From positions 1-64,000 of the forward strand of contig CBFFRP010000446.1 of the NCBI GenBank assembly GCA_965644295.1: a stretch of 64,000 nt of DNA. The letters run 5' to 3'. A model generated the notes under the pieces. It did no database searches, was not told where the DNA came from, and was given only the letters and a program-made list of their open reading frames with translations. The DNA is from Paraphysomonas bandaiensis. Lineage: Eukaryota; Protista; Chrysophyceae. The position numbers were made by a program, and so were the translations under genes. Shown here piece after piece: positions 13,401 through 54,720 of this stretch. Every line of letters begins with the position of its first letter. Position 1 is the stretch's first letter.

Positions 13401-15217
13401 AAGCAGAACCAGAACTGCTTTCGATGACATAAGCCAGTGTATTCGGAAGGAGCTTAACGATGGCACGACATAAAGATAGAGTAAGCCTCTCCCGCAGACA
13501 ACTCGTTCCCTGTCCTTCCGCCCCACCTCCAGGTGTTTTTGAGACAGGATCAACAAGGAAAGCCGCTGTGATCTGCGGATGGCTGAGTAGACTGTGAAGA
13601 GCCTCGGGATGAGCAATATGTCCTCCGCCCTCCACGTCTATAAGCAGAAGAACAGCAGCCTCAGAGAAAAGCTTTGAACGTGACGTGTCATCCCTTATAT
13701 GAGTACAAATATGAGTCAGCAGCAGCGGTAAGAATTCCGCGATAGTGGTCCTGGGAGAATGACGACAGGCTATCAACGACCAGGGTATCAGGTGCTCGTA
13801 ACTTGCTACAAAATCAAGGGGGCTGGATTCTGTATCTCTATGAAGAGAGTGCTGCGGAGATTGCTCGATGATGCGGTGCACGTTTTCAACAATAGCCGGA
13901 CAAACCTACACAACACTGTCACTGCACAGCACTCATACGTAAAACAGAAGGGGACACACCTTTCCTCTTAAATGCGCCAGAAAGCGACATTGAAGAAGCA
14001 TTAGACACGAGCTAACCGCAATGCCCACCTCTCCCGGCACAGGCGAGGCGAGTGCATACATTAGATGCCGCAAGATCCACTCCTGCGGTCAAAGAAAGCA
14101 GGGACTGTGAAAATGGCAAAGGAAATATAGTAGATACCAGTACCTCGGCTAGATCAATTATTCCAACATTTAGTTGAACAGCTCGAGATGCGGCAGTATC
14201 ATCAATGTCTTCCACAGCACCGAACTGCATGGCAGGGGTGTCATCAAACTTCAGAATACAGGCCTCCGCGGTGCCTTGTCCAGAATCAGGGAGCGCAGAG
14301 AGTAATGCAAAAATGAGGTGAGACATACACGATACTGCCCCGGCATGAAATGGAATCTGGTCGTAGCGGGAAAAGAGCAAAAAAGGGTCAGCAAGCATAG
14401 TAGGCAACACTTGCTGCAAAAGGAGGGAGGCGGAAGCGGAGCAGGCACGCGAGTCGGGTTCGCTCTCATCCGGCGGGGAAGAAAGGGCTTGTCCCATGAG
14501 ACCAGCAGTCCACACATGCAACCCCCCAGCATCTCCAGTATACCGTTCCAGGAGCTCACCAATTACCTGAAAATATGCACCTGTGGTATGGGAATGATCG
14601 GGGAGAAGTTGCCCTGGTTCGAGGCCAGGTGCTTGACCCACCACGCCATCTGCAAATACTTTAAATAGCTCTGATATAAAGTCGCATATTTCATCTCTAT
14701 ATCGCCTGGCCTCTGAGGAGGATTCAAATTGAATGAATCCGTCGACACTATTAGCGCTTTGAACAAACATCCATACATCAATAAGAAGAGGTCCCATCGC
14801 CTCAACCGCAACAGCAGATATGTTTATATTCTCTGACAAACAACACGACTTAATAACTGACATGCCGTCTTTGGACCCTATGAAGCGAACGATCTCCTGT
14901 ATGGGCAGTGCTGCGAGTACAGAGATGGCCGCAGAAAGACACGAGGCTGACTCCGCAGTGCCCATCTCAGTGACAACAGCCGCCCTCACCTCCGACCACC
15001 TCACGACCCTATGAGCGTATATCCCTTCCATGCAATGAAAGGAAACAGTCCGTACATGAGTTGACTTCTCACAGCTGAGTCCTCTTTCAATGAGGGCAGA
15101 CAAGAGGTCGTCAGTGTGGTGGCTGCCATACGACGCGCTCATTATCATACCCAGAGACTCTAACTGCTTGCTAGGGTCCTCACTGCGGAGAAGAGTTACG
15201 GCCAGAGAGTAGTCCAT
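10487..15217 (-). CDS. TPLATE-like (TSET complex beta subunit) / beta-adaptin-COPB-like protein, multi-exon
   Basis: Colinear minus-strand ORFs 14012-15217, 13123-13881, 11427-13373 and 10487-11419. N-terminus LRSEDPSKQLESL resembles TPLATE LRSNDALRQSSAL; QLNGSSD followed by a beta-sandwich resembles the LTGSSDP appendage of TPLATE/beta-COP. Exon limits approximate. Confidence 0.7.
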
Positions 15218-15316
15218 GTTGCCGGCCGAGAGGGTTGATGTGATATATCGACACCACTATACTGAAATATACATACGCCAAACTCCATAACTAACACACA
15301 CACACACGGTAAGATA

Positions 15317-15328
15317 TACATACATACA

Positions 15329-15360
<32 letters not shown>

Positions 15361-15557
15361 CATACATACATACATACATACATACATACATACATACATA
15401 CATACATACATACATACATACATACATACATACATACATACATACATACATACATACATACATACATACATACATACATACATACATACATACATACATA
15501 CATACATACATACATACATACGTACATACATACATACATACATACATACGTACATAC
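15317..15557. repeat. (CATA)n microsatellite between divergent genes
   Basis: About 60 tetranucleotide units seen directly. Confidence 0.99.
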
Positions 15558-15711
15558 CATACTCCTGCTATGTACATGCTGGTCGTGTCCATCTGCATCC
15601 TGGAGGGCTACTCTGTGCGTACGGATGGCTATTCTTGAGGTGAAGTGGAGGTGAAGATGTTCGTATGTGTGTTATGTGTGTGTATTCAGGGATGTTTTGA
15701 GTGGTGTGTGT

Positions 15712-16575
15712 ATGATGTCAGAGGAGTTCGCACCTGATATTCCCGCCTATCTCAATCGCATCAATATGAGTGATGAGGTGGATGTGTCTGTGAGGTCTCT
15801 GCGTGCTATTCATATGCACCACACCCTCTCAGTGCCCTTCGAGAACACAGACATCCATATACAGGACAGCAACAGCAGCAGCATCAAGACCAACAGCCAT
15901 AACAGGGGCATCAGCATCAGTCCAGTGGATATACAGCGTAAGATAGTGTATGAGGGCAGAGGCGGTTACTGCTTTGAGCAGAGTACGCTGCTGTATTACG
16001 TATTACGGCGCATGGGCTTTGAGGTGTGTCGAATGGGGTGCCGTGTGCGCTATCAGGTCCCTGATGGTGTTGATACTGGGAAACTTCATATGGTGCTTAT
16101 TGTCGATCTAGAGGGATCCCGCTGGCTCGTGGATGTTGCATTCGGTAGCATGACACCCACGTATCCGCTGAACATGGGCAGTACAGAGGAAGTGAACTCT
16201 CCCTACGACCCTCCAAGACGACTGACTTTCAGTGGTGAGTTAGGTGCACATGAAGCAAAGCTGAACGGAGAGTGGAGAACTTTATATGTTTGGGAGTCAC
16301 GTGTATTTACTCTACAAGACGCTCGGGTGTGCAACTGGTTTGCGTGCACTAACGAGGATTGTATATGCACTCAGGTTCTGATGCTAGCCCGCATCACAAC
16401 TGAAGCCCGGTACACCCTTCTCAACAGCGAGCTTAATGAATGGTATCACGATGGCACTAATCGGAAGCACAGGATCTCTACTTCCGGTGAGCTTCTGGAA
16501 AAAATGAAAGAGTACTTTTGTATATCTCTACCACCTGGTACCGTCATTGGCAACCCTCCCTTTCCTCGTGTGTAG
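15712..16575 (+). CDS. Arylamine N-acetyltransferase family protein
   Basis: VPFEN, GRGGYCFE (catalytic Cys), HMVLIV (His) and WLVDVAFG (Asp) motifs; intronless. Confidence 0.95.
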   Translation: MMSEEFAPDIPAYLNRINMSDEVDVSVRSLRAIHMHHTLSVPFENTDIHIQDSNSSSIKTNSHNRGISISPVDIQRKIVYEGRGGYCFEQSTLLYYVLRRMGFEVCRMGCRVRYQVPDGVDTGKLHMVLIVDLEGSRWLVDVAFGSMTPTYPLNMGSTEEVNSPYDPPRRLTFSGELGAHEAKLNGEWRTLYVWESRVFTLQDARVCNWFACTNEDCICTQVLMLARITTEARYTLLNSELNEWYHDGTNRKHRISTSGELLEKMKEYFCISLPPGTVIGNPPFPRV

Positions 16576-18027: not shown

Positions 18028-18381
18028 ATGAGAACCAATCAAGTGCCACAGCCTACTTCGTTATATTTTATATTGGGCTCAATATTCCGCAATAGAATTA
18101 TATCATCCATGTTTCCGTTCTAAACAACATTTTTAGAATTTTGAGGGACTAACAGCTTTCTAGAAAGATGAAAATATAATCTAGTTTTAGGCACCTTTCG
18201 CTAAATGTGCTTCTAAAGAATTATGTGCGTAAAATGCACACGTAAGTTTCAATGGGCTCAACACAAATTCAATTAACGATATCCAATGTATGGATTGCGA
18301 AATATCATACCTAAGACTTCGATCGGATGACATGCATGGAACTAGAGTACATACAATGTTTCACAACTTCTTGATATTCCA

Positions 18382-19440: not shown

Positions 19441-20227
19441 GTATGTGTGTATGTATGTATGTATGTATGTATGTATGTATGTATGTATGTATGTATGTAT
19501 GTATGTATGTATGTATGTATGTATGTATGTATGTATGTATGTATGTATGTATGTATGTATGTATGTATGTATGTATGTATGTATGTATGTATGTATGTAT
19601 GTATGTATGTATGTATGTATGTATGTATGTATGTATGTATGTATGTATGTATGTATGTATGTATGTATGTATGTATGTATGTATGTATGTATGTATGTAT
19701 GTATGTATGTATGTATGTATGTATGTATGTATGTATGTATGTATGTATGTATGTATGTATGTATGTATGTATGTATGTATGTATGTATGTATGTATGTAT
19801 GTATGTATGTATGTATGTATGTATGTATGTATGTATGTATGTATGTATGTATGTATGTATGTATGTATGTATGTATGTATGTATGTATGTATGTATGTAT
19901 GTATGTATGTATGTATGTATGTATGTATGTATGTATGTATGTATGTATGTATGTATGTATGTATGTATGTATGTATGTATGTATGTATGTATGTATGTAT
20001 GTATGTATGTATGTATGTATGTATGTATGTATGTATGTATGTATGTATGTATGTATGTATGTATGTATGTATGTATGTATGTATGTATGTATGTATGTAT
20101 GTATGTATGTATGTATGTATGTATGTATGTATGTATGTATGTATGTATGTATGTATGTATGTATGTATGTATGTATGTATGTATGTATGTATGTATGTAT
20201 GTATGTATGTATGTATGTATGTATGTA
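19441..20227. repeat. (TATG)n microsatellite between divergent genes
   Basis: About 195 units seen directly. Confidence 0.99.
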
Positions 20228-20274
20228 TCTTGGTGGTATAGATATGGTTATGGTGTCATATAAGTGTGTATGAG

Positions 20275-22032
20275 ATGGACTCGGACGATGTTTTGTGGGA
20301 TGATGTGTATATGGGAAGCAAGAGAGTATTCTTGCGGGCAGTTTCAGGGAGGAGTTATTGTTTTCGTTCCTGTGACTGGTCTCTGTGTGCGTCATCTGTG
20401 TCTGCGTCGGGCGGGATGTGTGAGGAGTATCCTGTTATGGTTCCGGGTGTTCCAGCTCTTGATTTTAAGGCTGATGAAGATGATATGTTAAGAGAGATGA
20501 GTGGTCCTCTGTCAGTTCCTCTCTTAAAGACACCTCACGACCCTCTCTGCTGTTGTGTGCCGTACTATGCTGTTGCTAGTGGTGTGCGCAGTGCACTGGT
20601 AAAGATTGACTCCACATGGTATCGTTTGAAAGGTTGTGGCAATAATGATGAAGGATTTCCAGTGAGGACACATCGTCGGCCCTCGACTGCTTCCGACACT
20701 GAGTCCTGGAGAGAAATTCGAGGCTGTACATTTGAGAATACCGCATACCGTGAATTGAATATGACTAGTAGTCTTTCTGCCACATTGGCTCCCTTGGGTA
20801 TCGTATCCGCGAATAAACCTACCGGCTGTTTCTTTTACGACCACCCCAATCAGCCCCTTGGGCCAAACTTTCCACCTGTTTGTGTTGTCGAGGCCACTAT
20901 TGGAGACAGGCGCTTCGGTTCCCATGTATTGGCGGGTATAGAGTTGATTCTCCCTCTTTTGCTTGAGGTGGACAAACTACAAGATACGGAGGTGCGTGCT
21001 CTGTTTCCCCCTATGCGCCCAGGTGTACGAGAATCAGTAGAAGGGTCAGGTTTTTGTAATTTCCCCTCCACTGGGGCCTTTATTACCGACTTCGCTCTTG
21101 GCACGTTGTTAATGGGACACGCAGAAGGAGCAAAAGGTATCCACTGGCCAGACCTTCCACGTGATTCTTCTACACTTGCCGATCTAACGCGGTGCCCCAC
21201 TGAGACTTTGCCTGAGAGAGCGCCACCAGTATCAGAACCTGCACCTCAGCAGTGGACGAACAGTGGTCACGTGGACATGTCTCCAAAGTGGATACCTGAA
21301 TGGAACAAGACCTGCAAGCTATTGAGTAAGCATTTGGAGACAATAAATAAGTCTTCAGGTCTGACGAAAGATGGTACTAACTCTGTGTTGGTCTATCTCT
21401 TTTCGCGATGTGGCTATGATGCTGGAAGAATTCTTGGAGGCATGCACAAACAGAATATTTCGTGGGGAACATTCCAAGACTCAATGTGTAGAAAGGTTAG
21501 TTACGTTTTTGTAATCTTCCTCGAGTGATAGTATGTATAGGATTTGGACGAGTGGCACTGTAATGCGCACGCGAATAATTTGGTTGTGATACCTGAAGGC
21601 CATATTCGATCGCCCCACCCAGGATATCAAGCACTCTTAAGCTTTCTTGACTTAGATATGGCTTTTAGCACGGATACTTTTTTAAACAGTAGTGGAGAAG
21701 AAGTAACAATAGGAATGAGCGAAGAGCAGTCGAAGCACTTAAGATGGCGGGAGTTTGTAAATATGATGGAGGTACTGGCAGGGAATGATAGCTCAACGGG
21801 TGTGCCGCAGGTTGCAAGGCCTACTGTGGAAGCTCAGAGTGATATTATTAAAGTAGTTAAAGCTGCTCTCTATGACACATTAGTACTGTCTTACACACGA
21901 GGGTACCAAGAGTGTTTGGACCAGTCTATTGCATGCCCCACTGGTGTGCCGTTTTATGATGAAACCATGCACAGTGCCGCTCATTGCATAATACGTCTAG
22001 CTATCATTGTAATGGCAAATTTTGTAGCTTAA
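20275..22032 (+). CDS. Uncharacterised protein with SelO/protein-kinase-like motifs (2 exons, intron ~21496-21540)
   Basis: YRLKGCG...RG...AYRE and GMH...NAHANNLVV...FLDLD motifs; in-frame GT-AG intron. Confidence 0.7.
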
Positions 22033-22140
22033 TATGCCAGTCTTAACTTGGATATATTTCACAGTGTGGTACTTAGACAACATTACTCTTGCTACAACTC
22101 TGTGATGGTCTTCACATCTGCTATTCAGACATCAATATGA

Positions 22141-22206
22141 TGTGATAACAAAGGTGCTATACAGCTTGTTTGTAACCCTATTCATCATCGACACACGAAG
22201 CACATC
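22141..22206 (+). mobile_element. Tiny relic of a different Copia element (RNase H end)
   Basis: Translates to CDNKGAIQLVCNPIHHRHTKHI, the Copia RNase H C-terminal signature. Confidence 0.8.
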
Positions 22207-23121
22207 GTCAAGTTAAAAATTAAAGTATGTTGCACATATTAAAATGTTACTGGCTTAATACGCACTCCATGCCATACTACGCGACTACGCAGGCCTTTAG
22301 TAGTCAATATGTGTATGGTTTATGGTTTACCTGCCTCTTGTGTAAAACTACTGATATACTTTGATCATTACTTCACTAGTTCACGTACTATCTGAGAACT
22401 TTCCTCCAGTTCGCTACGAACGATATAGATTCTATTGTTGATCAATATCCTCTTACTGGTATTATTGGCAATGCAACCCCTACAGACACAATTAGAAAGC
22501 AACACTACCTTATCAAGTCAATAGTCTTCTCTGATCAATGAACCCGTTCTAACCTTTGAGAACCGCTCCGGCTCATCCCTTCATGCACTCCAGTTCTGTG
22601 TTTATGAGGGAGCTTTATCCATATCCTCATCCATATCTGCTGTATAAGATATCTGCGGCAAATGCAGGGGATGCGGGGCTAACAGATCATATGAGGATTA
22701 GAGACAGCTGGCACACTATCAAAGAGTGAACTTGACTGGTTGTCAGGAAGCAGCAGTTAATAACGAGAAGCAACAGCTCGAGGAGCGATATGTGTGACCG
22801 CAATCTGGACATATCTACAGCATGTACCTCTATACCACACAAGCAGCAGTACAGCCGTAACTGTACCTATATACTACGTACACATACAGCAGTACACATT
22901 GTATCTGCACATGTACGGTGTACCTGTGCACAATGTACTTCTATACACATATGCTTGTACTACCTGCAACACTATCGTATACCTCCACTGGTAAAACACA
23001 GCAGAGTCGTCGACTCGTATGTACTGCTGCACGAGTGTCGCACATATCCAGCAGGGTGTGATAGTTCTTAGCTCCATCTCCGGCACAGCGATCACCTTCA
23101 ATCTGTATCCCCGTCCCATCA

Positions 23122-28298: not shown

Positions 28299-29214
28299 TA
28301 TGTATGTATGTATGTATGTATGTATGTATGTATGTATGTATGTATGTATGTATGTATGTATGTATGTATGTATGTATGTATGTATGTATGTATGTATGTA
28401 TGTATGTATGTATGTATGTATGTATGTATGTATGTATGTATGTATGTATGTATGTATGTATGTATGTATGTATGTATGTATGTATGTATGTATGTATGTA
28501 TGTATGTATGTATGTATGTATGTATGTATGTATGTATGTATGTATGTATGTATGTATGTATGTATGTATGTATGTATGTATGTATGTATGTATGTATGTA
28601 TGTATGTATGTATGTATGTATGTATGTATGTATGTATGTATGTATGTATGTATGTATGTATGTATGTATGTATGTATGTATGTATGTATGTATGTATGTA
28701 TGTATGTATGTATGTATGTATGTATGTATGTATGTATGTATGTATGTATGTATGTATGTATGTATGTATGTATGTATGTATGTATGTATGTATGTATGTA
28801 TGTATGTATGTATGTATGTATGTATGTATGTATGTATGTATGTATGTATGTATGTATGTATGTATGTATGTATGTATGTATGTATGTATGTATGTATGTA
28901 TGTATGTATGTATGTATGTATGTATGTATGTATGTATGTATGTATGTATGTATGTATGTATGTATGTATGTATGTATGTATGTATGTATGTATGTATGTA
29001 TGTATGTATGTATGTATGTATGTATGTATGTATGTATGTATGTATGTATGTATGTATGTATGTATGTATGTATGTATGTATGTATGTATGTATGTATGTA
29101 TGTATGTATGTATGTATGTATGTATGTATGTATGTATGTATGTATGTATGTATGTATGTATGTATGTATGTATGTATGTATGTATGTATGTATGTATGTA
29201 TGTATGTATGTATG

Positions 29215-29246
<32 letters not shown>

Positions 29247-30106
29247 TGTGTATGTATGTATGTATGTATGTATGTATGTATGTATGTATGTATGTATGTA
29301 TGTATGTATGTATGTATGTATGTATGTATGTATGTATGTATGTATGTATGTATGTATGTATGTATGTATGTATGTATGTATGTATGTATGTATGTATGTA
29401 TGTATGTATGTATGTATGTATGTATGTATGTATGTATGTATGTATGTATGTATGTATGTATGTATGTATGTATGTATGTATGTATGTATGTATGTATGTA
29501 TGTATGTATGTATGTATGTATGTATGTATGTATGTATGTATGTATGTATGTATGTATGTATGTATGTATGTATGTATGTATGTATGTATGTATGTATGTA
29601 TGTATGTATGTATGTATGTATGTATGTATGTATGTATGTATGTATGTATGTATGTATGTATGTATGTATGTATGTATGTATGTATGTATGTATGTATGTA
29701 TGTATGTATGTATGTATGTATGTATGTATGTATGTATGTATGTATGTATGTATGTATGTATGTATGTATGTATGTATGTATGTATGTATGTATGTATGTA
29801 TGTATGTATGTATGTATGTATGTATGTATGTATGTATGTATGTATGTATGTATGTATGTATGTATGTATGTATGTATGTATGTATGTATGTATGTATGTA
29901 TGTATGTATGTATGTATGTATGTATGTATGTATGTATGTATGTATGTATGTATGTATGTATGTATGTATGTATGTATGTATGTATGTATGTATGTATGTA
30001 TGTATGTATGTATGTATGTATGTATGTATGTATGTATGTATGTATGTATGTATGTATGTATGTATGTATGTATGTATGTATGTATGTATGTATGTATGTA
30101 TGTATG

Positions 30107-30140
<34 letters not shown>

Positions 30141-30141
30141 T
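28299..30141. repeat. (TATG)n microsatellite, ~1.84 kb, between divergent genes
   Basis: About 460 units with only a few interruptions (29217, 29249, 30109). Confidence 0.99.
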
Positions 30142-30233
30142 GCATGTGTATGAGGCTCTTCATCCTCTCTGTACATGCATATTATGCTCCATGGCGAGCA
30201 GTCTCCTTCCATCCATTCAATGCACTAACCTGA

Positions 30234-35800: not shown

Positions 35801-38800
35801 CTTATCAGATACCACTGACTTCCCATCAGCTCCCTCCACAGATATATCAGCTCCCTTATCAGATACCACTGACTTCCCATCAGCTCCCTCCACAGTTACA
35901 TTCGCAGCCTTAACTGATACCACTGATTTGTCATCAGCTCCCTCCACAGATATATCAGCTCCTTTATCAGCTACCACTGACTTCTCATCAGCTCCTTCCA
36001 CAGATGCATCAGCTCCCTTATCAGATACCACTGACTTCTCATCAGCTCCCTCCACAGATGTATCAGCAGCCTTATCAGATACCACTGACTTCTCATCAGC
36101 TCCCTTATTAGATACCACTGACTTGTCATCAGCTCCCTCCACAGATATATCAGCTCCCTTATCAGATACCACTGACTTCTCATCAGCTCCTTCCACAGAT
36201 GCATCAGCTCCCTTATCAGATACCACTGACTTTTCATCTACTCTCTTATCAGATACCACTGAGTTTTCATCAGCTCCCTTATCAGATACCAATGACTTCT
36301 CATCAGCTCCCTTATCAGATACCACTAACTTGTCATCAGCTCCCTCCACAGATACATCAGCAGCCTTATCAGATACCACTGACTTCTCATCAGCTCCTTC
36401 CACAGATGCATCAGCTCCCTTATCAGATACCACTGACTTTTCATCAGCAGCCTTATCAGATACCAATGGCTTCTCATCAGCTCCCTCCACAGATGCATCC
36501 GCAGCCTTATCTGATACCACTGACTTCTCATCAGCTCCCTCCACAGATGCATCCGCAGCCTTATCTGATACAATTGACTTCTCATCAGCTCCCTCCACAG
36601 ATGCATCCGCAGCCTTATCAGATACAATTGACTTCTCATCAGCTCCCTCCACAGATGCATCCGCAGCCTTATCAGATACAATTGACTTCTCATCAGCTCC
36701 CTCCACAGATGCATCCGCAGCCTTATCTGATACAATTGACTTCTCATCTACCATCTTATCAGATACAATTGACTTCTCATCAGCTCCCTCCACAGATGCA
36801 TCCGCAGCCTTATCAGATACAATTGACTTCTCATCAGCTCCCTCCACAGATGCATCAGCAGCCTTATCAGATACCACTGATACCTCATTGCTGGCGTCAT
36901 CTCGTGTATTGTTGTTTTTTTCATGTGATGCATCGTGTGATTTGTTACTGCTTTCAATTGAAGTAGTATCATTCACGTTGCCTATAGAAGCGCTATTTGT
37001 GGTCATATTGTCGACTTTTTGGCTTTCCTTCGCTGCATTGTAACTGGTTCCAGCAGTCGACATACTCTGAGAGTCAGAAAACATTGAGAAGGTATCCAGA
37101 GATTGTGCGTCATAATCAAATGCATCAGCAACCTGGCTCTGAAGAAATGTGAACGCGTGATCCTGTTTCGTAAATACATCAAGGCAACGGGCTACTTTCT
37201 TGTCGTCTGGCGGCTCATGCACTGTCAAGGCAGTAATATTGCCACAACAAAGGAAAACTTCAAGACCTATACTCATCTTCTCGTTGTAAATAGGAACGGT
37301 CACATTCTGCGGCGTCTCGTTTACATTAACACAGTGGGAGCGTACATGATTTAGGCATAGCACCAGTAGGGGAAGATATTGCGACAATTTATCTAAAGTT
37401 CCAATCATTCGTATTGGGACAGTAAATACAAACCGCTGGTTTGTTCGAACTTCCAATAATATAACCTTCAATGCTCCACTCTCTGCCCTAGGAGAAGCTG
37501 CGTGAACGGCTGCTGCCGAAGGAGTTGCCAGTATTTCTGGTGGGCGAGGGGAAGTTTCCAAAAAAGCTCTGTACATGAACATCAATCCAAAATGCCGATA
37601 GCACCCTTTCCTTGAGCGCAGACGGTCAAAAAGAGAGTGCAAGGAATCGACAGTAGCATCCTCGGCCGCCTGATCCTTATCATCCTCAGTGCCCTGTGAG
37701 GACGAAAGTGGTTCGACTGAAGGGTACTCACGATTCCTCTTTCGCATGACATCTACAGCCACCTCGTTCGTTGTAAGGTTCCCTTTCGGGTCTAAGGACA
37801 GATGAAGTTGCCGCATAACATAAAACCCTGTCTCCTTCTCTCTAAACTGGATCGTCACAAGATATAAATCGTGATCAGCTTGTCCCGAGTCATCTTTACT
37901 CTCTTCCCCCAAGGCAACAGGTCGTAGAAATCCACAAGACATCCGCAGCTCATATGTGTACCTGGCATCGAACTGCTTGAGCGGGAGCGCAAATGGAGAA
38001 GACAGCATAATTATTCCCGATTTGTTTGTCTTGACTTCTAAAAATCGAATACGTTGAATTTCACCCTTCCAGTTTGGTTGAACCGACAGCAGAAGGGGAT
38101 ACAAGCCCCCGACCACCAGACCTGCGGATGCGCGCAATTTATGCAACAGATCTCTCCTAACCTCGGGGGTGAGCTTGCTTTTCCAACAGTGCCTACATTC
38201 TTGCCCTCTATAGAAGGCCTGAATTTTACTGGCAGCAGATTCGTTTCGAGATTTTGTACCAGGCAGCTTTTCAATCAAATTCGCAAGTGGCCCTTCGATG
38301 AAGTCTATCACCTCCGATGAATATGTGGACCAAGTCTCGAGTGCAATTGCACATTGAGAATTGCTAGGATCCAAAGTTACAGCTTGCTGCAAGACACAAA
38401 CTATATCAGTACTACATGTGCAATTATTGCGTTAAGCAAGAATACTGACCTTAACAGCAAGTTGTGCATCAGATGTACGCCCACAGCGGAAACAAGATTT
38501 CGCAAACTTAAACCATAGACTGGACTTGAGAAAAGCCTGTCGATCCCTCACCAGTCCCTGACCATAGAAATCTGCCGCAAGTGAATACAGTCCATGCATA
38601 ACGCATTTGTCTCCTATATCCCTCCACGTGACAAAGCTAGATATCCAGGCCTCATATGACTCCTGGCATACACTTTGCTGAGAAACAGACTCTCCACTGG
38701 CCTGGAGACTGTTATCAGCGGCTGCATCCGACTTCTCAGATACCATGTGACTGAACACCTGATAACATGTTACATTTGACACACCAATCATATCAAAAGA

Positions 38801-39737: not shown

Positions 39738-40104
39738 GCGTCACTGTGTGTCTGTGTCTGTATCAGTGCACCGGGTGAAGGGGAGACATGCACCGCTCAT
39801 TCACAGTGTTCGGTGTGTGTGTTGACAGCGTGGTTGTTGTGATGGTGTGTGTATGAGCGCTGCGGTCTTCTCACTGCGGTCTCATGTGCATGTGGATCAG
39901 CCCGCACACACAGCACAGATACACACCCCTCCATATGCATACACACACACACACATACACATACACACACACATACACATGCAGGCGTGTGTCTGCACGA
40001 TGTTTAATACCGAAGATCCAGATGAAACGGCTAGTCCTCACCAGCAGCAGACAACACTGTATTCTATCTGTATATATCTGTATATATCTGTATATAGTTC
40101 TATC

Positions 40105-40770
40105 CCTCATGCCCTCATGCCCTCATGCATGCTTGTCCCTCATGCATGCATTGATCACTTGTCCCTCATGCATTGATCACTTGTCCCTCGTGCATGCATT
40201 GATCACTTGTCCCTCATGCATGCATTGATCACTTGTCCCTCATGCATTGATCACTTGTCCCTCATGCATTGATCACTTGTCCCTCATGCATTGATCACTT
40301 GTCCCTCATGCCCTCATGCATTGATCACTTGTCCCTCAGGCATGCATTGATCACATGTCCCTCATGCCCTCATGCATGCAATGATCACTTGTCCCTCATG
40401 TATGCATTGATCACTTGTCCCTCAGGTATTGATCACTTGTCCCTCATGTATGCAATGATCACTTGTCTCTCATGCATGCATTGATCACTTGTCCCTAATG
40501 CATGCATTGATCACTTGTCCCTCATGTATGCATTGATCACTTGTCCCTCATGCATTGATCACTTGTCCCTCATGCATGCATTGATCACTTGTCCCTCATT
40601 CCCTCATGTATGCAATGATCACTTGTCCCTCATGCATGCATTGATCACTTGTCCCTCATGTATGCAATGATCACTTGTCCCTCATACATGCAACGATCAC
40701 TTGTCCCTCATGCCCTCATGCATTGATCACTTGTCCCTCATGCATGCTTGTCCCTCATGCATGCAATGGT
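40105..40770. repeat. Minisatellite, 22-30 bp units GCATTGATCACTTGTCCCTCAT(GCAT)
   Basis: More than 20 tandem units, each typically with TGATCA and ATGCAT palindromes. Confidence 0.95.
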
Positions 40771-41077
40771 CACTGGTGCAATTGTGCACACTACGCAATA
40801 AAACACATTCGCCATAATCTGCGTGTTCTAAACGTTTTTAAAATGTTTTAGTTTACCTGTATCTGACATATTTAATCCTTTGCATAGTCGTTTACATTAG
40901 TTTTGAAATTTTACTAGATTTTGACGGTTTTAACAGGTTTGTTGATCACTTCGACTTTCTGCTATATATTATTTACGATCTATAATATATATGATATATG
41001 ACATGACCAGCCCTCTATTCATACTGTGCTGCTGTGTCAAGTGGATAGCATTTAAATTCTCTGAGTCTCCCTCATAT

Positions 41078-41320
41078 ATGTTGAGTTTTGCTGTTTTAGA
41101 GAATTTAAAAGCTGTAGTTCAAAGATATATGTACTATGACTGTTAATGGAAGAATTCAGAAGTGGTTAACTGCTTTATGAGAACTGAGGTCACAATAGCA
41201 AATAGCAATCATAGTTGTGAAACTGAAATATATTGACCGTATAAGACCGTGATATCTAGCATTGTATGGAAATGATTGGTAGTTGAGAAAACATGAATTT
41301 GGCGATTGACAAGTGATATT
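41078..41320 (+). repeat. AT-rich dispersed repeat family 2
   Basis: Homologous to 25196-25440. Confidence 0.7.
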
Positions 41321-42340
41321 GATCATAAGTTTTTTATATGTTACTATATGTTATAATATCAGTATAGAGTGAAAGAATTGTTCAGTTATGTCATTTTCTT
41401 ACAATATGTACGTATATATAACATTAATGAATGTAATAATAGAAACTGAAAATAATGCAAAGATATAATCACGAGATGTCAATATATGTAATATTCTCTA
41501 TGACGATGAATTAAAGTGATTTAGTTTTATATACAGCGATTCATATACTATGTGACAATATTGCAATCCCATAGTCCACTTTGTATAAAATATTCGAAGT
41601 ACACTGTATATATGGTATATGGGACTTGTTCAAGTAGCCAGGAAATAGTATAAGTAATCATATTTCTCTGTATTTCACGATGCATGTGAAAGTGTAATAA
41701 CGGAAATTTCTACCTAGAATGCCAACTAAGTACCGCTGCTTGAAGCATATTTACTATTTACTCCACTATTAATACTGTTGAAAGGCTTTTCAGTAGAGTA
41801 GCCTGCGCATATCTATGCACCTCATCGATTGGAGGCTCTTATGTCCTTATGTTCTTGCGCCTTAGTAGATTCTGTGGAATGCAAGTACAGTTGAAGGTAT
41901 TAGTCATGCTTGTAATGAGTTACTAATAAAATTACACAATACTTGGCAATTATAATTGCGCGAGCTATAACTAATAATTGAAATTTAATCGCTAAAAAAC
42001 TATTGCAATTAAATTTCAATTAATTGTTACACAGCCCTGATACTCTCAATCAAGCTTCATTCCAGTATAAAGTCCGTATAAGCATATTTTTGCTGCTAGG
42101 GTTAGATCTCTTTCCCGTCTTTCACAACTCGCCTTTTTCTACACACCACTACAGCACGATATATCCTAGCAAATCACGTATTATAAATTTACAACACAAG
42201 AATAATATGCTGAGCCTATACACACTACAGCAGGCAAGTAGAATAGTAGAGTGTAGCATTCACTGCTAACAAATAAACACAAAATTAAGACAGACTAATC
42301 TAGTTATATCTACATGGTTGATATTCATCTCCAGTTCACA

Positions 42341-45300
42341 TCAGTAAAGAGACTTCTTTTTCTTCTTAACGTAAGGATCTGACTGTGCTGACATAATTTG
42401 CTCGTATTGTTTCACTATTTCCGCTTGATCCGGTAATATTCGGCTCCTGCGAATACACATTACACCCGCTTCTCCTCATGACACAAACACTAAGTATACT
42501 ATATACGTAGGTCACACCTGGTAACTTCCTCAATTCCTGATCCATATGCTTTTCCTAAGACAAACTCCAGCTCAGACTTACGGCCAGTGGGGCCTGTGAA
42601 ACAAATTTTAGCACCAGCACTGGCAAATGTGTCACTAATACCTCCTCTCCCAAGTTCTCTTGCCATCGATGTAATTGGCGTTGTCAGAGATATATTTTGC
42701 AGTAAAACTTCGACAACGCGCCTGCAGATACGGGTCACGTCGGGAAAACAGTGACAATTCGAAGTAAATATTCAGATTGGTGCAAATACTGCATAGACAA
42801 ACTAATTGTACTCACATATGTTGCCACGGCATCACTCGCGCCATTTGCGCTGCCCTAGTGTCTCCCTGAATCAAACATAGGAAAAATTGAGAATAAAGAA
42901 TGTTGACCGAATGGATACATCACTGCCCTACCTCAAATCGAAGATTGTGCTCATCCAGTAGTTTCGAAATTTCAGGTTCATATATATACCCCATATATTG
43001 TCGCGCGTTGATTAAGTCATGTCCTACTATCTTGTAGCTACCCCCACAACGGTATACCACCACCGATAACGAGTGATTGCTAACACGAATGCCGCGACGC
43101 AACATTTCAACGACTTCAGGCCCACCTGCTCGACGCCTACGTTCCCTGACTACTTTCAGACGAGCCTGTCGACAACGGGCTACGCACTGAATTATCAAGC
43201 ACGCACGGTTCATTTTCCTCAGTTTTCGGCGGTGAATCCACCCCCTGAATGACATTCTTACAAAACAGCTAGAACAAATTCAGACCATACTTCACTCTGG
43301 ACTGTATGAGGGACGCTTGATAGAAACGCCTCGCGCGCATAGTGTCTTTCCTTGCCTTGGCCTGCCATACAAGCATGAAACAACTCACATTGGGGTCAGT
43401 AAGCAGGTTAGAAAATAGAATACATACGATATAAATCTCATATAACAGTAAGACTGTGCGCACCTCATTAGTATTCGCAATCTGTCTGTTTCTATCCAAG
43501 ATACCCATGTGCAGTCGTTTCCACAGCGATCGCCCTTGAAATCCTCTAAACGCCCGCTGAATAACTTTCGCACAATGTTCTTCTACTCTCAACCTGACAA
43601 TAAGAGAAACGAGTACATCACTCACTCACGATGAATTCGTGTAAACATACCCGTTGCGTTCTTGTCGACGGTACTCTATAAAAGGGAAAGTCAGTCGGGC
43701 AACAGAAGCGTCTGAATAATCCCGAGTGTGATCAGGTCTACCTCGTCCACAGGACACGAGTCGTACACCCTACATATATTTGGCGTAAGTCGCAGGACTG
43801 ATTATATTAAACTTCGGAAACAAGACAAACGTCAGTAAAATCGCTACCTGTGCAGCATATTCCGCCAACAGCTTCCATTTTGGCTTGTTTCGAATATCTA
43901 GCTCTGTCTGATCAAGAGCTTTCGCATAATACTTAACAGCCACTTCATAGACGTGCGAGGTTTCTGATGGAAGTAGGATGAGAGGTCGAACCGAGAGAGA
44001 TCCATTAGATGACCACTTCTGTCGGTTCCTTTGGCAGATAGTTTCATACACCTCCAATGGTGTCCTTTCACGATCCTCTTCTTTCTCCTCTATCACTGTA
44101 GGTGTTTGTTTCTGGTTGCGCCCATGAGGTTGTATCTGAGAGGGTTGAACCATACTTCCTGAAATCATCAACATCTCGCCACACCGAAAACACTCCACGT
44201 CGAGAGACACTGGTCGTCGTCGAGTCGAATCGGACTTCCGCTTGCTACTACTACTGCTTCCAGATGGAACTTCATCTTCGACATCTTCTTTTAAGTCTCG
44301 AAATGCCAACCGTTGCTTTAACACTAATTCATGAGAGTTCTCGAATAGATTCTCGAATACAATCATACGTAGGGATATGCTTTCAGCATCTCTATATGCA
44401 GTCTTGTCTCGGGTCCTGACAAGAAGGCGCTTTAGACGGACGTATATATCTGCTCGCATGCTTCCGTTAGCATGACCTCTCATCCCCCCTCCAAAGCAGC
44501 AGAACTGCTTTGCAATGACAAAACATGACATCAGAGAAAGTGTCCTTGCATTACATCCTGCCACTCTAAACCCATTCCAGAAGTATGATTTCTCTAGTGT
44601 TAATAAAAAATCTGCTGAGGGTGTGCGTTCCCTTGCTTTGAGCTCTTTATTGAGAATGGTAGCATAGAAATCTTCCGTATTCTTATTATAGGCTGACTGT
44701 TGTAGCGGTTTCCTAATTTTCCATAGCTCATTCATTTCAAGTCTCTGAAGAGTAAGTAGAATTGCCACGGCCTCCTCAAGCTGGTCTTCTCGCACCAATT
44801 TAGCGGCGGTGTTACCTGGGGCACACCAAGAGTACAGTAGAGCTACGAGAAGACAAAAAAGTGCAGGTAAGAAGCCAGGAAAACGGGCTAGAAGTATATA
44901 TAACAAGTCTACTGAAAAGTCAGCGCGCCCAGTGCCAACCAAGTGACACAAGGCCAAATGTAGCATGTCCCATCTATCACGATCGCCGTCAGAGCCCCAC
45001 ACAGTTTCCACCCCGGCAGCATGCAGTCCGCTAGATGCGCTATGCATTAGCTTCACAACAAGATTGCGAACAGAAGAAATGGGGGTGCCACGAATGTCAA
45101 CAATCGTTTCTAATGTCATGCGACAACCGAGGTTATTGCTCAAGCGTACATCGTCAGCAACAACCTATATTCTAGTCAAATAACGAAAAGCCACGTATAC
45201 ATGTAACGATAGTGTCAAAATTGCATGTCAACAAGCACTAAAATAAAATACATCCCAAAGGGGATTCAATACGGATCAGTACACAACAAAAGGTAGTGTA

Positions 45301-45897: not shown

Positions 45898-46042
45898 GAT
45901 GGTCAATTCAGAGTCCTCATATCAGAACCAGCGGTGACAATCACCATGCCACGCCTCCACTATGAGCGATACATACATATACAATACACCCTTAAAAAAT
46001 ATAACAGACAGATGATCACACACTGCACGTACCCATACACAC

Positions 46043-46432
46043 ATACCTACCTACCTTCCTACAGTACCTTCCTACATACATACATACATACATACATACA
46101 TACATACATACATACATACATACATACATACATACATACATACATACATACATACCTACCTACCTACCTACCTACCTACCTACCTACCTACCTACATACA
46201 TACATACATACATACATACATACATACATACATACATACATACATACATACATACATACATACATACATACATACATACATACATACATACATACCTACA
46301 TACATACATACATACATACATACATACATACATACATACATACATACATACATACATACATACATACATACATACATACATACATACATACATACATACA
46401 TACATACATACATACATACGTACATATACATA
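46043..46432. repeat. (CATA)n microsatellite with a (CCTA)n block, between divergent genes
   Basis: Seen directly. Confidence 0.99.
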
Positions 46433-46519
46433 CGGTATCATACAGGGGGCAGTTGACATGGAGTTGTGTGTATCGTTAGCACAGTGAGGTCGCCATCTCT
46501 TGCACTATAGAAGTGTAGG

Positions 46520-49299: not shown

Positions 49300-49372
49300 C
49301 CCTTAATATATACACCCCCCTCTAAACATAACACACCCACGCAAGTGCTACATGTCCACATCCATAACATGA

Positions 49373-49822
49373 ATGTATGTATGTATGTATGTATGTATGT
49401 ATGTATGTATGTATGTATGTATGTATGTATGTATGTATGTATGTATGTATGTATGTATGTATGTATGTATGTATGTATGTATGTATGTATGTATGTATGT
49501 ATGTATGTATGTATGTATGTATGTATGTATGTATGTATGTATGTATGTATGTATGTATGTATGTATGTATGTATGTATGTATGTATGTATGTATGTATGT
49601 ATGTATGTATGTATGTATGTATGTATGTATGTAGGTATGTATGTATGTATGTATGTATGTATGTATGTATGTATGTATGTATGTATGTATGTATGTATGT
49701 ATGTATGTATGTATGTATGTATGTATGTATGGATGTATGTATGTATGTATGTATGTATGTATGTATGTATGTATGTATGTATGTATGTATGTATGTATGT
49801 ATGTATGTATGTATGTATGTAT
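49373..49822. repeat. (TATG)n microsatellite between divergent ORFs
   Basis: About 112 units seen directly. Confidence 0.99.
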
Positions 49823-49876
49823 ACGGTGTGCATCATGTGGAGGTTGTTCTGTTGAGTGTCAGTTATCGTTGCAGTC

Positions 49877-51062
49877 ATGTCAGAGATATCTAAAACAAAG
49901 AGGGCAGTGGACGATCTGTGTAGCAGGCTGTATGATCACAGGCACGTGTCTGCTATGAGTGCGGAGGATCTGCATGCCATGCAGAGCACTCTGCAGACTC
50001 TGCGCGACAGATGCGATGCCTTCATAGGCAAGATAGACCTCAAAGATCCCGTCACGCAGGCCCCCAGATACGGCCCCAATATGGTCAAGAAGATTACCGA
50101 TCTCTCGGATAGTATCGACGCGCTTATAGGGGACTGCAACGAGGCTGTGTCTCAACTGCCCCCTCAAGATGAAGCTGTGCACGAAGACCCTGCTGACGAG
50201 ATGCCCTCTTCAGTCCCAGACCCTTCTGACCACACACATGCACCTGTGGACATCACTACTCCACCTGAGACACAGACACAGTCTACGAAATCGATGCTCT
50301 TATCTGATCGCGTTGCTGAAGAAGAGAAGGAAGCGTTGAGTCAACAAGCAGCATTGATTCGAGCTCGGAAGAATAAAGAAGAGCAAGAAGCCAAAGAAGC
50401 ACAGGGGTGTGAGTTATACCGTTTACGATGGGTGACGCATCATATAAATACTCGCTGGAAATCGGGTGGTATCTCTGAAGCGCTGACTGCCCTTGCTAGT
50501 GAGATCAAGCGCTCTGACGACGAGATTATTCAGAATGTTAAAATTAGAGAAGCTGTAGAACTTGTATCAAATATTTTAGATAACGTGCACAAGAAACCCG
50601 ATGATGAAAAGCTTCGGCGAATCCGATCGAATCACCCAGTTATACATGTGAGTGATTGGATAGTGTTATTATCGTTCACTTATGTGAGATCATCGAAGTT
50701 TCGTAGTGTATGCTAACCGTGTATTGTGTATGGAGTAGGAAAAGCTTACTAGTCATGGAGAGTCTGGATTAGGATTGCTGATCTCAGTTGGATTCCTCGC
50801 CAAGGCAACATACTCCAATGGCACACCTATCATCGATGAACCACCCATAGGCGCTCCTCCTAATGTAAGTGAGGAGGATGTGCCTAGAGCTATAACGGCT
50901 ATTGCGGACCCGGGATACATGTATACAGTCATGCTTGAGATGTTCGAGCCAAGCATAGAGCCTGCTGAAGGGTCTGCGAATTGGATACGTTGGTTTGATG
51001 GCTTGGAGGAGTCTAAGAAACAGTTGCAATTGTTTTTGGATAGTCTAAATATGTCTAAATAG
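49877..51062 (+). CDS. PUB-domain protein (p97/Cdc48 cofactor-like), 2 exons
   Basis: AVELVSNILDNVHKKPDDEKLRRIRSNHPVIH|EKL..GLGLLISVGF fits the PUB consensus; in-frame intron ~50648-50738. Confidence 0.8.
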
Positions 51063-51350
51063 CATTTGATTACAAATATACTTCTTAACTTATTCAAATT
51101 TATATTTTTTAAATTTATATTTAAGGTACGATACTAGGTTTTTAATCTATATATTTCAATATGACACATCTTTGAAAAGTGATTGCTTTTATTGTTTTAG
51201 TGAACACTGCAGGGCTAGGGAATAGGGAACTATATATGGAATTGATATATATTGTAAAATATAGTGATTGGTGGAGAGGCCTAATATTTACTATTCTACC
51301 ATACTGGTTGTAAACGTAACTCACAATATATTGATAGTCATCAATATAGA

Positions 51351-51530
51351 TATATATATGAAAGTATTATTATTAGCAATAGGCGCCGAGAATCAGCAAC
51401 AGATAGGTAGCTAGATGACTAGATAAAAACTAGTCAAGCTAGAGATGGACTTATACCTGTAACTAACTAGTACAAAAGCTATATAACACTACGAAAGCAG
51501 ATTGTACGTCGCCGCAAGCACCAAGGTGCA
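51351..51530 (-). mobile_element. Structured retroposon, copy D (5'-truncated, 3' ~180 bp only)
   Basis: Matches 17352-17531 (GAAAGT..TATTAGCAATAGGCG..GTCGCCGCAAGCACCAAGGTGC) with a (TA)n tail; no clear TSD. Confidence 0.8.
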
Positions 51531-51641
51531 CACTATGACTATCATGAATCTTCAACACATACTATCATCAATTCAGTTTGTGATATGTTTCATTGATTTA
51601 AGATGACACTCAATTCTAAGAGCGCTTCATACAAAAAAATA

Positions 51642-54057
51642 TTAATTAGATTTAATATCGAAATCTAATTTTACTGTTGTATCTCCATAGACAAACCGCG
51701 GACATACCTGTAAATAATTCCTACCATTGACCATGTGGGGTTCCCTGAAAAACTTGACACTAGTTTTGAGGTACGGAGGGAAATTATCCCCCTGACAGAA
51801 GCTGATTTTCTCTGATTCAGAGACATCAAAATCGACCCACACAGCTACACAGTCACATTGCTCTTCGTCAAGTACGGTGAAGGGGACATTCACAGCAGTT
51901 GGCACTGACACAACGGCATCATCTCCGGCTTCTCGTTCCAGTAAACAGCGGTCATAGTGGAGAGTTGCTACAGATGTGGGGGAAGACAATATTTTCTTAC
52001 GATACACCCCAAGCTTGTATGGAAACAAGTTTTCATGCCAACCGGTCTGAACGTCATCAAGGTAATCGTGATTAAATCCCGACACTCTGAATCGCACAAA
52101 ATATATTAATGTGATAACGAAACCAAAAGCAATGCACAACTTACATTCCCGCAGTTCCGTGACTGACCCGCAAATCTGGCAGGCAAAACGCAGCTACCAT
52201 TATATGAGCTCTAATAGGGCACACCTGAAACCTCGATGCCTGTACAGGGCTCCTTCTTATGAAATTCAGGGCATAGAGATAAGATAATGCACTCTCAATG
52301 GGCAAGCAGTGCAACTGGTAAAAGAAACACTCCGAAGTAATTGTTACCACTGATAATTGTGTAGACGGGGAGTTTCCCGTGCTATCGTCTCCCTCGAAAA
52401 GAGAGGTGAAACCACTTGATAGAAAGGATGCCCCATCTTCATCATCAAGTACCACACAACCTTGTGGTGATAGACTACCAGCAGTGATATTACTACTGAT
52501 TAACTGTCCGTAGAACATGGCCGAAAATTGTTTCTTCTCTATTGACACAACCTGAGCCTTACCATCACTGTCTCCTAGATGGCCCACATTTTCTAGAGCT
52601 GAAGCTGTCATCAGAGCCAACGTAGAGCCATCTGAGATGTCCACAAACAGGCCTTTGCCTGGCAATGACTTGGTGGCACTCACGTAGGCTTCTACAACTG
52701 TCTGTATCCCGCTCTGCCACTTACCCATAACTACACTATCGTTTAGCATTTGCAAACGCTCAGGTCCACATAGCAGATGCCAGCCACATCCACAAGGCTC
52801 TGGAGCCTGAGCTACCTGTTCTACCCTAGGTTTTTTTATCTTACTCGGACTCTCGCTTGTCACGGCGCGATCAACAGAGCACCAAATTTGCAGGGCATCA
52901 TGGGTTATAGTAACGTCAAAAATATCTCCGGCATTGCACTTATATCCCCCCTCCTTTCCAAGAGGATATACCACTTGTAACCAATGGTCTTGCCAAGCGT
53001 GCGCACCTGGAGAAGTAGAGTAGCTGTATCCATTATCACGAATGTCTGATTCAGGTAGTAGGTCAGCTCTCCACCACACAAGAAGGCCATGGACAGTCCC
53101 ATCTGCAGTGGCCTCGATTCGAACACTGTGGCTTGCCCCTTCACACTGATGAAACTGCACTGAAAATAAGGGACACGTGTCACTGAGTATCCTTGCTCCT
53201 CTAGACAGCAATTGCTCCCCCCAGTGGACAGGAATCATCCGTCCATGTGCACAGGTTGACCGACTATTGACTCCATCTCTACGGGGGGATAGCCCTCCCA
53301 TGCAACTATTTCCCACAGTAGACATGTGAAGCACATCTTCGCTTTCAATTAGCGATCCAAAAACACAAGCTTGACTGGGGATTACGCGACCTTCAATTGG
53401 CCCAACAGATTTGTCCATGAACCTCTCTATAGCATCCCCATGCGCTAATAACACTCCCTCACCCAGCAACGCAGAATCCATAAGCTCCGATAGTATAATA
53501 TCCGGTGAAAATGGGAGTGCTTCGATGTCAGAACTCTTCGATGCAACTATAAGTATTTGATCGCTCATACCATTGCTCTCAACCACAGCACGAGCAACAT
53601 CAGCAAGAGCTTCAAACATTTCACACCCGATGACAAACTCTGCTCCGTGACGAACACACATCATCGCCAACAGCCCTGTGCCTGTGCCAATATCCAGCAC
53701 TGTAGGCCGTCTGTTGTACTTGTGTATGAAGGTAGAGATGGATGCGGCTATGGCTTGTTCGTATATGTCATTTCTACAGTGATCATGCAGCATAGAGGTC
53801 ATCTGAGACATGCCGATGACACGTCTCATTACTGCCAGTTGATCCTCCTCCTCTGACCATACCAATGACCCGTCAATAGGGCTGACAGAGGCGGATAGCA
53901 TTACTCTAACAGAGTCTCCAGATGGGGTCCTCTTCACGCCTATGAGCACCTCCTCAGCGCTGGACACATCCTGAACATCCGTCAGATCATACGGAGTCAC
54001 TCCGGACCCTCCACTACCAACCAAACCACCGCCTCCCTTGTCCAGACCCTGATACAT
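51642..54057 (-). CDS. PRMT7: Protein arginine methyltransferase 7 (2 exons)
   Basis: MLHD..RN..Y, VLDIGTGTGLLAMM, SELMDSALLGEG, WQDHWLQ (DHW loop) and a degenerate second methyltransferase module. Confidence 0.9.
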
Positions 54058-54087
54058 GGCGAAACGAGGTAGATATAGAGAATAATA

Positions 54088-54720
54088 TGCATGTATGTAT
54101 GTATGTATGTATGTATGTATGTATGTATGTATGTATGTATGTATGTATGTATGTATGTATGTATGTATGTATGTATGTATGTATGTATGTATGTATGTAT
54201 GTATGTATGTATGTATGTATGTATGTATGTATGTATGTATGTATGTATGTATGTATGTATGTATGTATGTATGTATGTATGTATGTATGTATGTATGTAT
54301 GTATGTATGTATGTATGTATGTATGTATGTATGTATGTATGTATGTATGTATGTATGTATGTATGTATGTATGTATGTATGTATGTATGTATGTATGTAT
54401 GTATGTATGTATGTATGTATGTATGTATGTATGTATGTATGTATGTATGTATGTATGTATGTATGTATGTATGTATGTATGTATGTATGTATGTATGTAT
54501 GTATGTATGTATGTATGTATGTATGTATGTATGTATGTATGTATGTATGTATGTATGTATGTATGTATGTATGTATGTATGTATGTATGTATGTATGTAT
54601 GTATGTATGTATGTATGTATGTATGTATGTATGTATGTATGTATGTATGTATGTATGTATGTATGTATGTATGTATGTATGTATGTATGTATGTATGTAT
54701 GTATGTATGTATGTATGTAT
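54088..54720. repeat. (TATG)n microsatellite 30 bp upstream of the PRMT7 ATG
   Basis: About 158 units seen directly. Confidence 0.99.

Follow-up and report, generated by a model that had tools for sequence, protein, structure and literature searches.

Long, pure (TATG)n arrays in the gaps between divergent genes of Paraphysomonas bandaiensis

Introduction

In a stretch of 64,000 nucleotides from the chrysophyte Paraphysomonas bandaiensis (positions 1 to 64,000 of contig CBFFRP010000446.1, or C446, in the 62.6-Mb assembly GCA_965644295.1), long arrays of the tetranucleotide TATG lie next to the starts of genes. We call this whole stretch the window. Why would a single short motif accumulate at such places, up to hundreds of copies at a time? 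A sequence-only reading of the window suggested that the repeat itself might be the core promoter or a chromatin signal for the genes on both sides, that the length of the array might act as a tuning knob, and that the array might work through left-handed DNA (Z-DNA) or through methylation of adenine to N6-methyladenine (6mA).

Here we use other array-bearing loci from the same genome, along with transcript ends beside two of the arrays, to ask which of these ideas hold. We found that the arrays are a bidirectional-promoter-associated element, enriched between head-to-head genes. We consider it fairly probable that they are promoter-flanking (TATG)n inserts in untranscribed divergent gaps and that they are tied to negative supercoiling.

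Results

Arrays lie between head-to-head genes

Tandem Repeats Finder (TRF) identified exactly six period-4 arrays of the TATG/CATA family in the window, which are 247-1849 bp long and 95-99% pure. Four of them read TATG on the plus strand: array 2 (19441-20228; 788 bp, 197 copies, 99% matches), array 3 (28299-30147; 1849 bp, 463 copies, 99% matches), array 5 (49369-49822; 454 bp, 113.5 copies, 98% matches), and array 6 (54086-54721; 636 bp, 159 copies, 99% matches). The other two read TATG on the minus strand: array 1 (15316-15562; 247 bp, 62 copies, 95% matches) and array 4 (46034-46426; 393 bp, 98 copies, 95% matches). As the sequence-only reading had stated, and as TRF and our gene map confirm, all six adjoin start codons, five are in head-to-head gaps, both orientations occur, and none is in an intron or a convergent gap. 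In five of the six cases, the array fills 54-82% of the head-to-head gap. In the window, the nearest start codon is 36-262 bp from the edge of the array, much as the sequence-only reading had put it; at other loci, the distance can be as large as about 2.5 kb. (The window has 6 arrays in 64 kb, as compared to roughly one per 70 kb in the genome, but the window was chosen for its arrays, so we do not claim enrichment.)

To see where arrays occur more generally, we considered the window together with 20 loci from the same genome, taken in contig order around arrays, and we mapped the genes in these 258 kb by hexamer coding potential. Of the arrays of at least 200 bp, 22 of 23 have a minus-strand gene to their left and a plus-strand gene to their right. 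Divergent gaps account for just 0.232 of the non-array, non-coding bases, so the placement by class of spacer is far from random, as the sequence-only reading had implied (22/23 divergent versus 23% under the null; binomial p = 2e-13). Viewed from the side of the gaps, arrays are present in 22 of 28 divergent gaps, versus 1 of 23 same-strand gaps of at least 400 bp (Fisher p = 7e-8), and in 0 of 26 convergent gaps. The pattern is already visible within the window, where arrays are found in 5/5 head-to-head gaps, 0/5 convergent gaps, and 1/9 same-strand gaps (Fisher p = 5e-4; for this comparison, convergent and same-strand gaps were counted only if they were at least 400 bp). Same-strand gaps of this size are mostly tandem intergenic DNA; the introns that are seen in RNA measure 58 and 91 nt. 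The sole array outside of a divergent gap is array 6, which lies beside a PRMT gene, so at most one array is at a tandem promoter. Across the 258-kb map, no arrays were found in introns or in coding DNA, in either orientation.

These results depend on the predicted genes and their orientations, which are backed by Pfam matches in the window and also at other loci (Arm repeats, WW, Vps54, histidine phosphatase, and Dak1/Dak2). Furthermore, false gene calls should be random in direction, and would weaken the association with divergent gaps rather than create it.

Several gaps serve as controls. The tandem gap upstream of the LMF1 gene (22030-23121, plus strand; the gene begins at 23122) has no TATG array and contains only a degenerate purine-pyrimidine tract (22784-23002). 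The tandem gap upstream of a large repeat-rich gene (39741-42500, minus strand; the gene begins at about 39737) also has no TATG array and contains an imperfect (AC)n tract and a 26-bp minisatellite. In the convergent gap at 51166-51665, there are no unique RNA contigs and a dispersed repeat is tolerated, but an array is likewise missing. Conversely, a divergent gap can do without an array: we encountered six such cases incidentally, at the 20 other loci. These array-less divergent gaps are 162-1048 bp long. When the arrays are subtracted from the window's array-bearing gaps, what is left falls in the same range (130-1017 bp on the coding map). Within the gaps, we did not see a rule for the orientation of the arrays: by hand count, the right-hand gene is the nearer one for 10 of 15 TATG-strand arrays and for 7 of 10 CATA-strand arrays.

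Degenerate tracts of mixed CA, TG, and TA lie upstream of array-less starts at 22784-23002, 39857-40042, 59155-60095, and 63437-63624. We considered whether such tracts are the rule at promoters that lack an array, and rejected this idea: they are present in 4 of the window's 8 same-strand gaps, but in none of the 14 at the other loci. No difference was seen between promoter ends and terminator ends (0.544 versus 0.532; p = 0.16). The degenerate tracts may be a regional feature of the window.

A single motif accounts for nearly all microsatellites

In the entire assembly, (TATG)10 has 62,434 forward and 65,017 reverse matches (127,451 in all), which corresponds to at least 0.5 Mb of perfect TATG repeat. 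From the arrays in our sample, we estimate that there are around 900 long arrays in the genome, or about one per 70 kb, and that they make up about 1% of the DNA. The same searches of the whole genome found no matches to (TG)20 and just 6 matches to (TA)20, at two places. Among perfect microsatellites of at least 20 bp in 253 kb, the TATG family accounts for 18,484 bp versus 128 bp for all other motifs together, and 80 of these 128 bp are (TAGG)n variants within the arrays. Short runs of TATG are rare. Because nearly all of the microsatellite DNA is TATG and short runs are scarce, this is not the usual spectrum that slippage produces, and something specific to the motif must be acting.

We also considered whether a transposon or another common flanking sequence carried the arrays to their locations. 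We rejected this as a general origin because the flanks of 25 arrays are unrelated to each other, except for one duplicated pair.

Arrays are pure and change rapidly in length

The duplicated pair, on contig C2, shows how quickly the arrays can change. An inverted duplication there comprises 1.8 kb, an array, and 189 bp, in two copies. The flanks of the two copies are identical at 1816/1817 and 188/189 bases, while their arrays are 624 and about 1441 bp. Barring assembly error, this implies that the length of an array shifts far faster than point mutations accumulate. In 18.8 kb of array we counted just 86 interruptions, and the units are 98% pure. With their high purity and rapid changes in copy number, the arrays behave as an active, unstable microsatellite. 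The length of the arrays thus has the lability that the proposed tuning knob would require; the other half of that proposal, that the knob belongs to a core promoter made of the repeat, did not survive the analysis of transcripts below.

The inverted duplication on C2 (L005:3588-6217 and L006; composite 9217-12726) flanks a DDE_3 transposase gene (L005:6118-7158) and a second gene, and one of its copies ends 6 bp from a third array. Possibly, this is a DNA transposon whose very long terminal inverted repeats include TATG arrays.

The arrays also vary internally. Of 25 arrays, 6 contain runs of a variant unit, (TAGG)n, and these runs are confined to the 3' half of the TATG strand; they are at the 3' end in five arrays and at the 5' end in none. 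Examples are the end of array 4 (46034-46075) and the ends of arrays at loci L001, L004, L015, and L020. These one-sided runs show that the arrays have an internal polarity, with directional growth as a possible cause.

Could the arrays be neutral junk, a slippage-prone microsatellite that survives only where it is harmless, in DNA that is never transcribed? Every unit on the TATG strand carries ATG and GT, and a transcript with (UAUG)n would gain upstream AUGs as well as splice donors of the GUAUGU type; the arrays are indeed missing from coding DNA, introns, and gaps that contain untranslated regions (UTRs). Their purity and their changes in length are typical of an active microsatellite as well. 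However, the CATA strand has no ATG or GT (in RNA, no AUG or GU), and still there are no arrays in introns or UTRs in either orientation. Similarly, untranscribed convergent and tandem DNA takes in the dispersed repeat, a solo long terminal repeat (LTR), and the debris of transposons, but no arrays. Both observations imply that tolerance alone is not sufficient. Also, there are almost no other microsatellites, so general slippage must be low, and the shortage of short TATG runs is unlike a neutral length spectrum. We therefore think it unlikely that the arrays are neutral.

Transcripts begin outside of the arrays

If the repeat were a core promoter, then transcripts might be expected to begin within it or at a set distance from it. 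The distances from the arrays to the start codons vary widely (see above). We used assembled contigs from four runs (three of RNA and one DNA control) for the region 49799-54109, which runs from array 5 to array 6, with 24 nt of each array at its two ends. That the three RNA runs are truly RNA is clear from spliced contigs in which 50648-50738 and 52087-52144 are missing. For the PRMT gene, RNA contigs reach 54072 (contig X11) and 54018 (X8); array 6 begins at 54086, or 14 bp beyond. For the PUB gene, RNA contigs begin at 49890, 49908, and 49963, at least 68 bp from the end of array 5 at 49822. In contrast, contig X3 from the DNA control extends 33 letters past 54080, into array 6, which is near the limit of a 31-mer assembly. 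This implies that RNA running into the array would have shown up. Thus, by the contig ends of these two genes, transcripts start in the unique flanks and not in the arrays.

The repeat is not needed at most promoters either. Divergent gaps occur at a density of one per 9-13 kb, which implies several thousand in the genome versus about 900 arrays; as a rough estimate, about one in six head-to-head gaps contains an array. Since tandem promoters and most head-to-head gaps lack an array, and since the RNA contigs stop at least 14 bp short of one, we conclude that the TATG repeat is not the core promoter, contrary to the sequence-only reading. The promoter link that it drew is correct in part: the arrays are placed non-randomly, in head-to-head gaps and adjoining the starts of genes, but transcription, by the contigs of two genes, does not start within them.

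In full, the idea is that the repeat itself acts as a core promoter or chromatin signal that fires both ways, with its length setting the output. In its favor, the arrays lie 36-262 bp from start codons and are labile in length. Also, the PRMT transcript begins within about 14 bp of array 6, so that, about 30 bp upstream of where transcription starts, the sequence is repeat. But the RNA contigs stay out of the arrays even though a DNA contig enters one, just 1 of 23 tandem promoters has an array and six other divergent gaps have none, and with around 900 arrays for several thousand divergent gaps, most promoters must work without one. We judge this explanation to be improbable.

Weak duplexes, but little sign of Z-DNA or methylation

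The arrays have unusual physical properties. They are 75% A+T, and direct reading of the sequence confirms that the TATG unit is a strict alternation of pyrimidines and purines with one ApT per 4 bp, as had been noted before. Uninterrupted runs of strict alternation in the window's arrays reach 244, 790, 1854, and 637 nt, and there are more. By nearest-neighbor calculations, the duplex energy is -1.09 kcal/mol per bp in the arrays versus -1.36 in coding DNA and -1.28 in other non-coding DNA, and just 0.04% of other 200-bp windows are as weak as the arrays. When folded as single strands, both strands of the arrays have a minimum free energy of 0, so we rejected the formation of hairpins or cruciforms.

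A long, unstructured, easily melted tract might be a replication origin or a DNA-unwinding element. In fission yeast, A+T-rich intergenic islands act as replication origins. The arrays resemble such islands in that they are 75% A+T, 0.2-1.9 kb long, the least stable duplex in their surroundings, and unstructured as single strands, and their spacing of about one per 70 kb, in intergenic DNA that contains promoters, would be suitable. However, the arrays in the window are just 3-16 kb apart, and the switches in skew at the arrays are inseparable from the switch in the direction of transcription. That the arrays are origins seems very unlikely to us.

The strict alternation had also suggested Z-DNA. 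If this alternation were under selection, then the changes within arrays should spare it, yet 38 of the 86 interruptions break it. Nor is the ratio of transitions to transversions raised within the arrays: it is 28:17, versus 2.0-2.4 between strains. Neither comparison is a strong test, since variants are soon lost through slippage. TpA is a poor step for Z-DNA, and half of the steps in a TATG array are TpA. Together with the absence of (TG)20, the interruptions and the substitution ratio do not point to selection for alternation of the Z-DNA type. We found no Pfam match to the Z-alpha domain in this genome, but none in control genomes either, so that this negative carries no weight.

The other proposed role for the motif was as a target for 6mA. 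In ciliates, green algae, and early fungi, 6mA is known from ApT close to the starts of genes, so the dense ApT of the arrays, one per 4 bp near gene starts and matching this known target, is a genuine similarity to those systems. But the arrays lie upstream of the start in untranscribed DNA, while the known 6mA marks linkers downstream of the start. Also, our search of the genome, which gives a lower bound of at least one MT-A70 gene, found a single match, which is METTL4-like: among solved structures, the protein's only match is of the METTL4 type (7cv6), with none to MTA1/AMT1, METTL3, or METTL14. As this search found no writer of the ApT type, we give very little credence to the idea that the arrays are 6mA islands.

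Genes beside the arrays

We searched the genes that flank the arrays against Pfam, exon by exon. Array 1 separates a gene without an assigned name (ATG at 15217, minus strand) from an N-acetyltransferase gene (ATG at 15712, plus strand); measured from the edges of the array to the first in-frame ATG of the flanking frames, the distances are 101 bp on the left and 163 bp on the right. Array 2 lies between a DUF599 gene (ATG at 19239, minus strand; 210 bp) and another gene without an assigned name (ATG at 20275, plus strand; 49 bp), and array 3 lies between a CRAL_TRIO/PX gene (ATG at 28036, minus strand; 262 bp) and a 3'-5' exonuclease gene (ATG at 30234, plus strand; 91 bp). For these genes, Pfam agrees with the labels that the sequence-only reading had given to the N-acetyltransferase (Acetyltransf_2), DUF599, CRAL_TRIO plus a PX exon, and the 3'-5' exonuclease. 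In contrast, the labels TPLATE and kinase-like have no Pfam matches.

The assignments beside the other three arrays are weaker. Array 4 lies between an IQ-motif gene (ATG at 45897, minus strand; about 137 bp) and a coiled-coil gene (ATG at 46520, plus strand; 101 bp), both with sub-threshold Pfam matches. Array 5 lies between a gene without an assigned name (ATG at 49299, minus strand; 76 bp) and the PUB-domain gene (ATG at 49877, plus strand; 57 bp). Array 6 is about 29-36 bp from the PRMT-type gene on its left (ATG at 54057, minus strand) and has no clear gene, and hence no in-frame ATG, on its right. The labels PUB and PRMT-type methyltransferase are plausible, but their Pfam scores are below the gathering threshold; the IQ motif is weaker still, and the coiled coil has weak sub-threshold matches and nothing stronger. 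The first large exon of the PRMT-type gene (52141-54057, minus strand) is identified by Pfam and by the spliced contigs X8, X11, and X15; it had no matches in a metagenome scan.

The arylamine N-acetyltransferase gene beside array 1 (15712-16575) has a closest relative that is 50% identical and that sits on a contig of 1.15 kb. Most of the other 120 matches have identities of about 33%, and those of them that carry a name are bacterial. Judging from these similarities, the gene may be an old transfer from bacteria.

Other repeats in the window

To the right of array 6 is retroelement debris (54722-57328, strand not assigned) that includes an aspartyl-protease-like fragment (55413-55652). Within the same region is a solo LTR of about 310 bp (56265-56577), from a very young, high-copy LTR retroelement: the family has at least 40 copies at 99-100% identity, many of them paired 4.87 kb apart. 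The dispersed repeat between the convergent PUB and PRMT genes (51380-51560, about 150 bp) has 552 candidate copies at 72-78% identity. Its word depth is very high in DNA as well as RNA runs, and it has no matches in Rfam. At the left end of the window (1-8589) are two neighboring Copia-type retroelement frames on the minus strand (rve, RVT_2, and SH3_retrovirus), which share identical short repeats spaced 5796 bp apart. Finally, a very long open frame on the minus strand (32897-38416) consists largely of 54-nt (18-residue) repeats and has no Pfam match, and the 26-bp minisatellite in the tandem gap upstream of the long repeat-rich gene has about 24 copies (40132-40747).

Discussion

What would put so many copies of one motif between divergent genes? 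Under the twin-domain model, net negative supercoiling is expected between diverging transcription units, and the order in which arrays are found (divergent above tandem above convergent) matches the net negative supercoiling that is expected. We propose that the arrays are a genome-wide class of long, very pure, length-unstable microsatellites in the untranscribed middle of bidirectional gaps. Each flanking gene keeps 40-260 bp of unique sequence, in which its transcript would start, so that an array would be an insert that pushes two core promoters apart; for the closest genes, the DNA just upstream of the start of transcription would be repeat. The arrays would arise and persist where diverging transcription piles up negative supercoiling, and they might expand under this stress, be kept as a torsional or chromatin spacer, or both. 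We link them to supercoiling because they are nearly confined to divergent gaps, are 75% A+T, have unstructured strands, and form the weakest duplex in the vicinity.

A stronger version is that the arrays are a dedicated torsional and chromatin buffer for head-to-head genes: a sequence-specific, easily unwound or left-handed tract would absorb the negative supercoils from two diverging polymerases, and would set the coupling of the gene pair or decouple it. This version is tentative, and on balance we doubt it.

Several points weigh against the supercoiling explanation. Where the arrays lie, their motif specificity, purity, and lability in length, and the transcript ends outside of them come directly from the data, while a role for supercoiling, and whatever effect the arrays may have on expression, are what we infer from them. 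Torsional stress alone predicts that (TG)n would be used too, yet (TG)n is absent, which requires either a factor that recognizes the sequence or an expansion process that is particular to this motif. The gene map is our own, and the 20 loci were picked because they hold arrays. Array 6 has no convincing gene on its right, so it may be at a tandem promoter. Part of the difference between the arrays of 624 and about 1441 bp could stem from assembly error within the repeats. Finally, the transcript ends are those of assembled contigs for two genes and are not mapped 5' ends.

Comparison to known promoter repeats

Repeats in promoters are well known from yeast. According to Vinces et al. 2009, as reviewed in PMC3899988, unstable tandem repeats of many motifs, tens of bp long, are present in about 25% of yeast promoters. 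These repeats are like the TATG arrays in being A+T-rich, fast-varying in length, and associated with promoters, and they are nucleosome-free and able to tune expression. They differ in that they occur at promoters in any orientation, while here a single motif forms tracts of 0.2-1.9 kb, nearly always between head-to-head genes. A (TA)n repeat in the Haemophilus hifA-hifB bidirectional promoter is phase-variable, and its length alters the output of both genes (PMC3899988). This too is a simple repeat within a bidirectional promoter region, but in the bacterium a few units shift the -10/-35 spacing, while here there are hundreds of units, in a eukaryote, and the transcripts start outside of them.

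The (CA/TG)n repeat upstream of the prolactin gene in the rat is a Z-DNA-prone promoter repeat or "flipon" (PMC3899988; PMC10474125). The arrays share with flipons the strict alternation of pyrimidines and purines, near the starts of genes, in DNA that is expected to be negatively supercoiled. However, (TG)n, which forms Z-DNA more readily, does not occur in this genome, and the interruptions within arrays do not spare the alternation.

Supercoiling couples neighboring genes in yeast (PMC10205079). There, as we propose here, divergent genes interact via the intervening DNA, and the distribution of the arrays fits the sites of negative supercoiling. In contrast to the arrays, the yeast work concerns ordinary intergenic DNA and topoisomerases, and no dedicated repeat element is known from that system.

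The TATG arrays are set apart from known promoter repeats by their single motif, their kilobase length, their restriction to head-to-head gaps, and their 1% share of the genome. Microsatellites in promoters are not new, but we found nothing in the literature like TATG arrays at this placement. (Another species, Paraphysomonas imperforata, has an annotated assembly according to 10.1101/2024.02.03.578753.)

Implications

In P. bandaiensis, a single tetranucleotide makes up an estimated 1% of a genome that is otherwise nearly without microsatellites, and it is found almost only between diverging genes. If the arrays are neutral, then a very unusual expansion process, specific to both motif and location, would still be at work. 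If they are a buffer, then P. bandaiensis would have a promoter architecture built on one microsatellite, of which we found no description in the literature, and the fast-changing length of the arrays would give heritable tuning that is specific to each gene pair. The arrays may thus offer a clean natural system for asking whether the mechanics of DNA shape promoter sequence and whether the length of a repeat tunes the coupling of neighboring genes.

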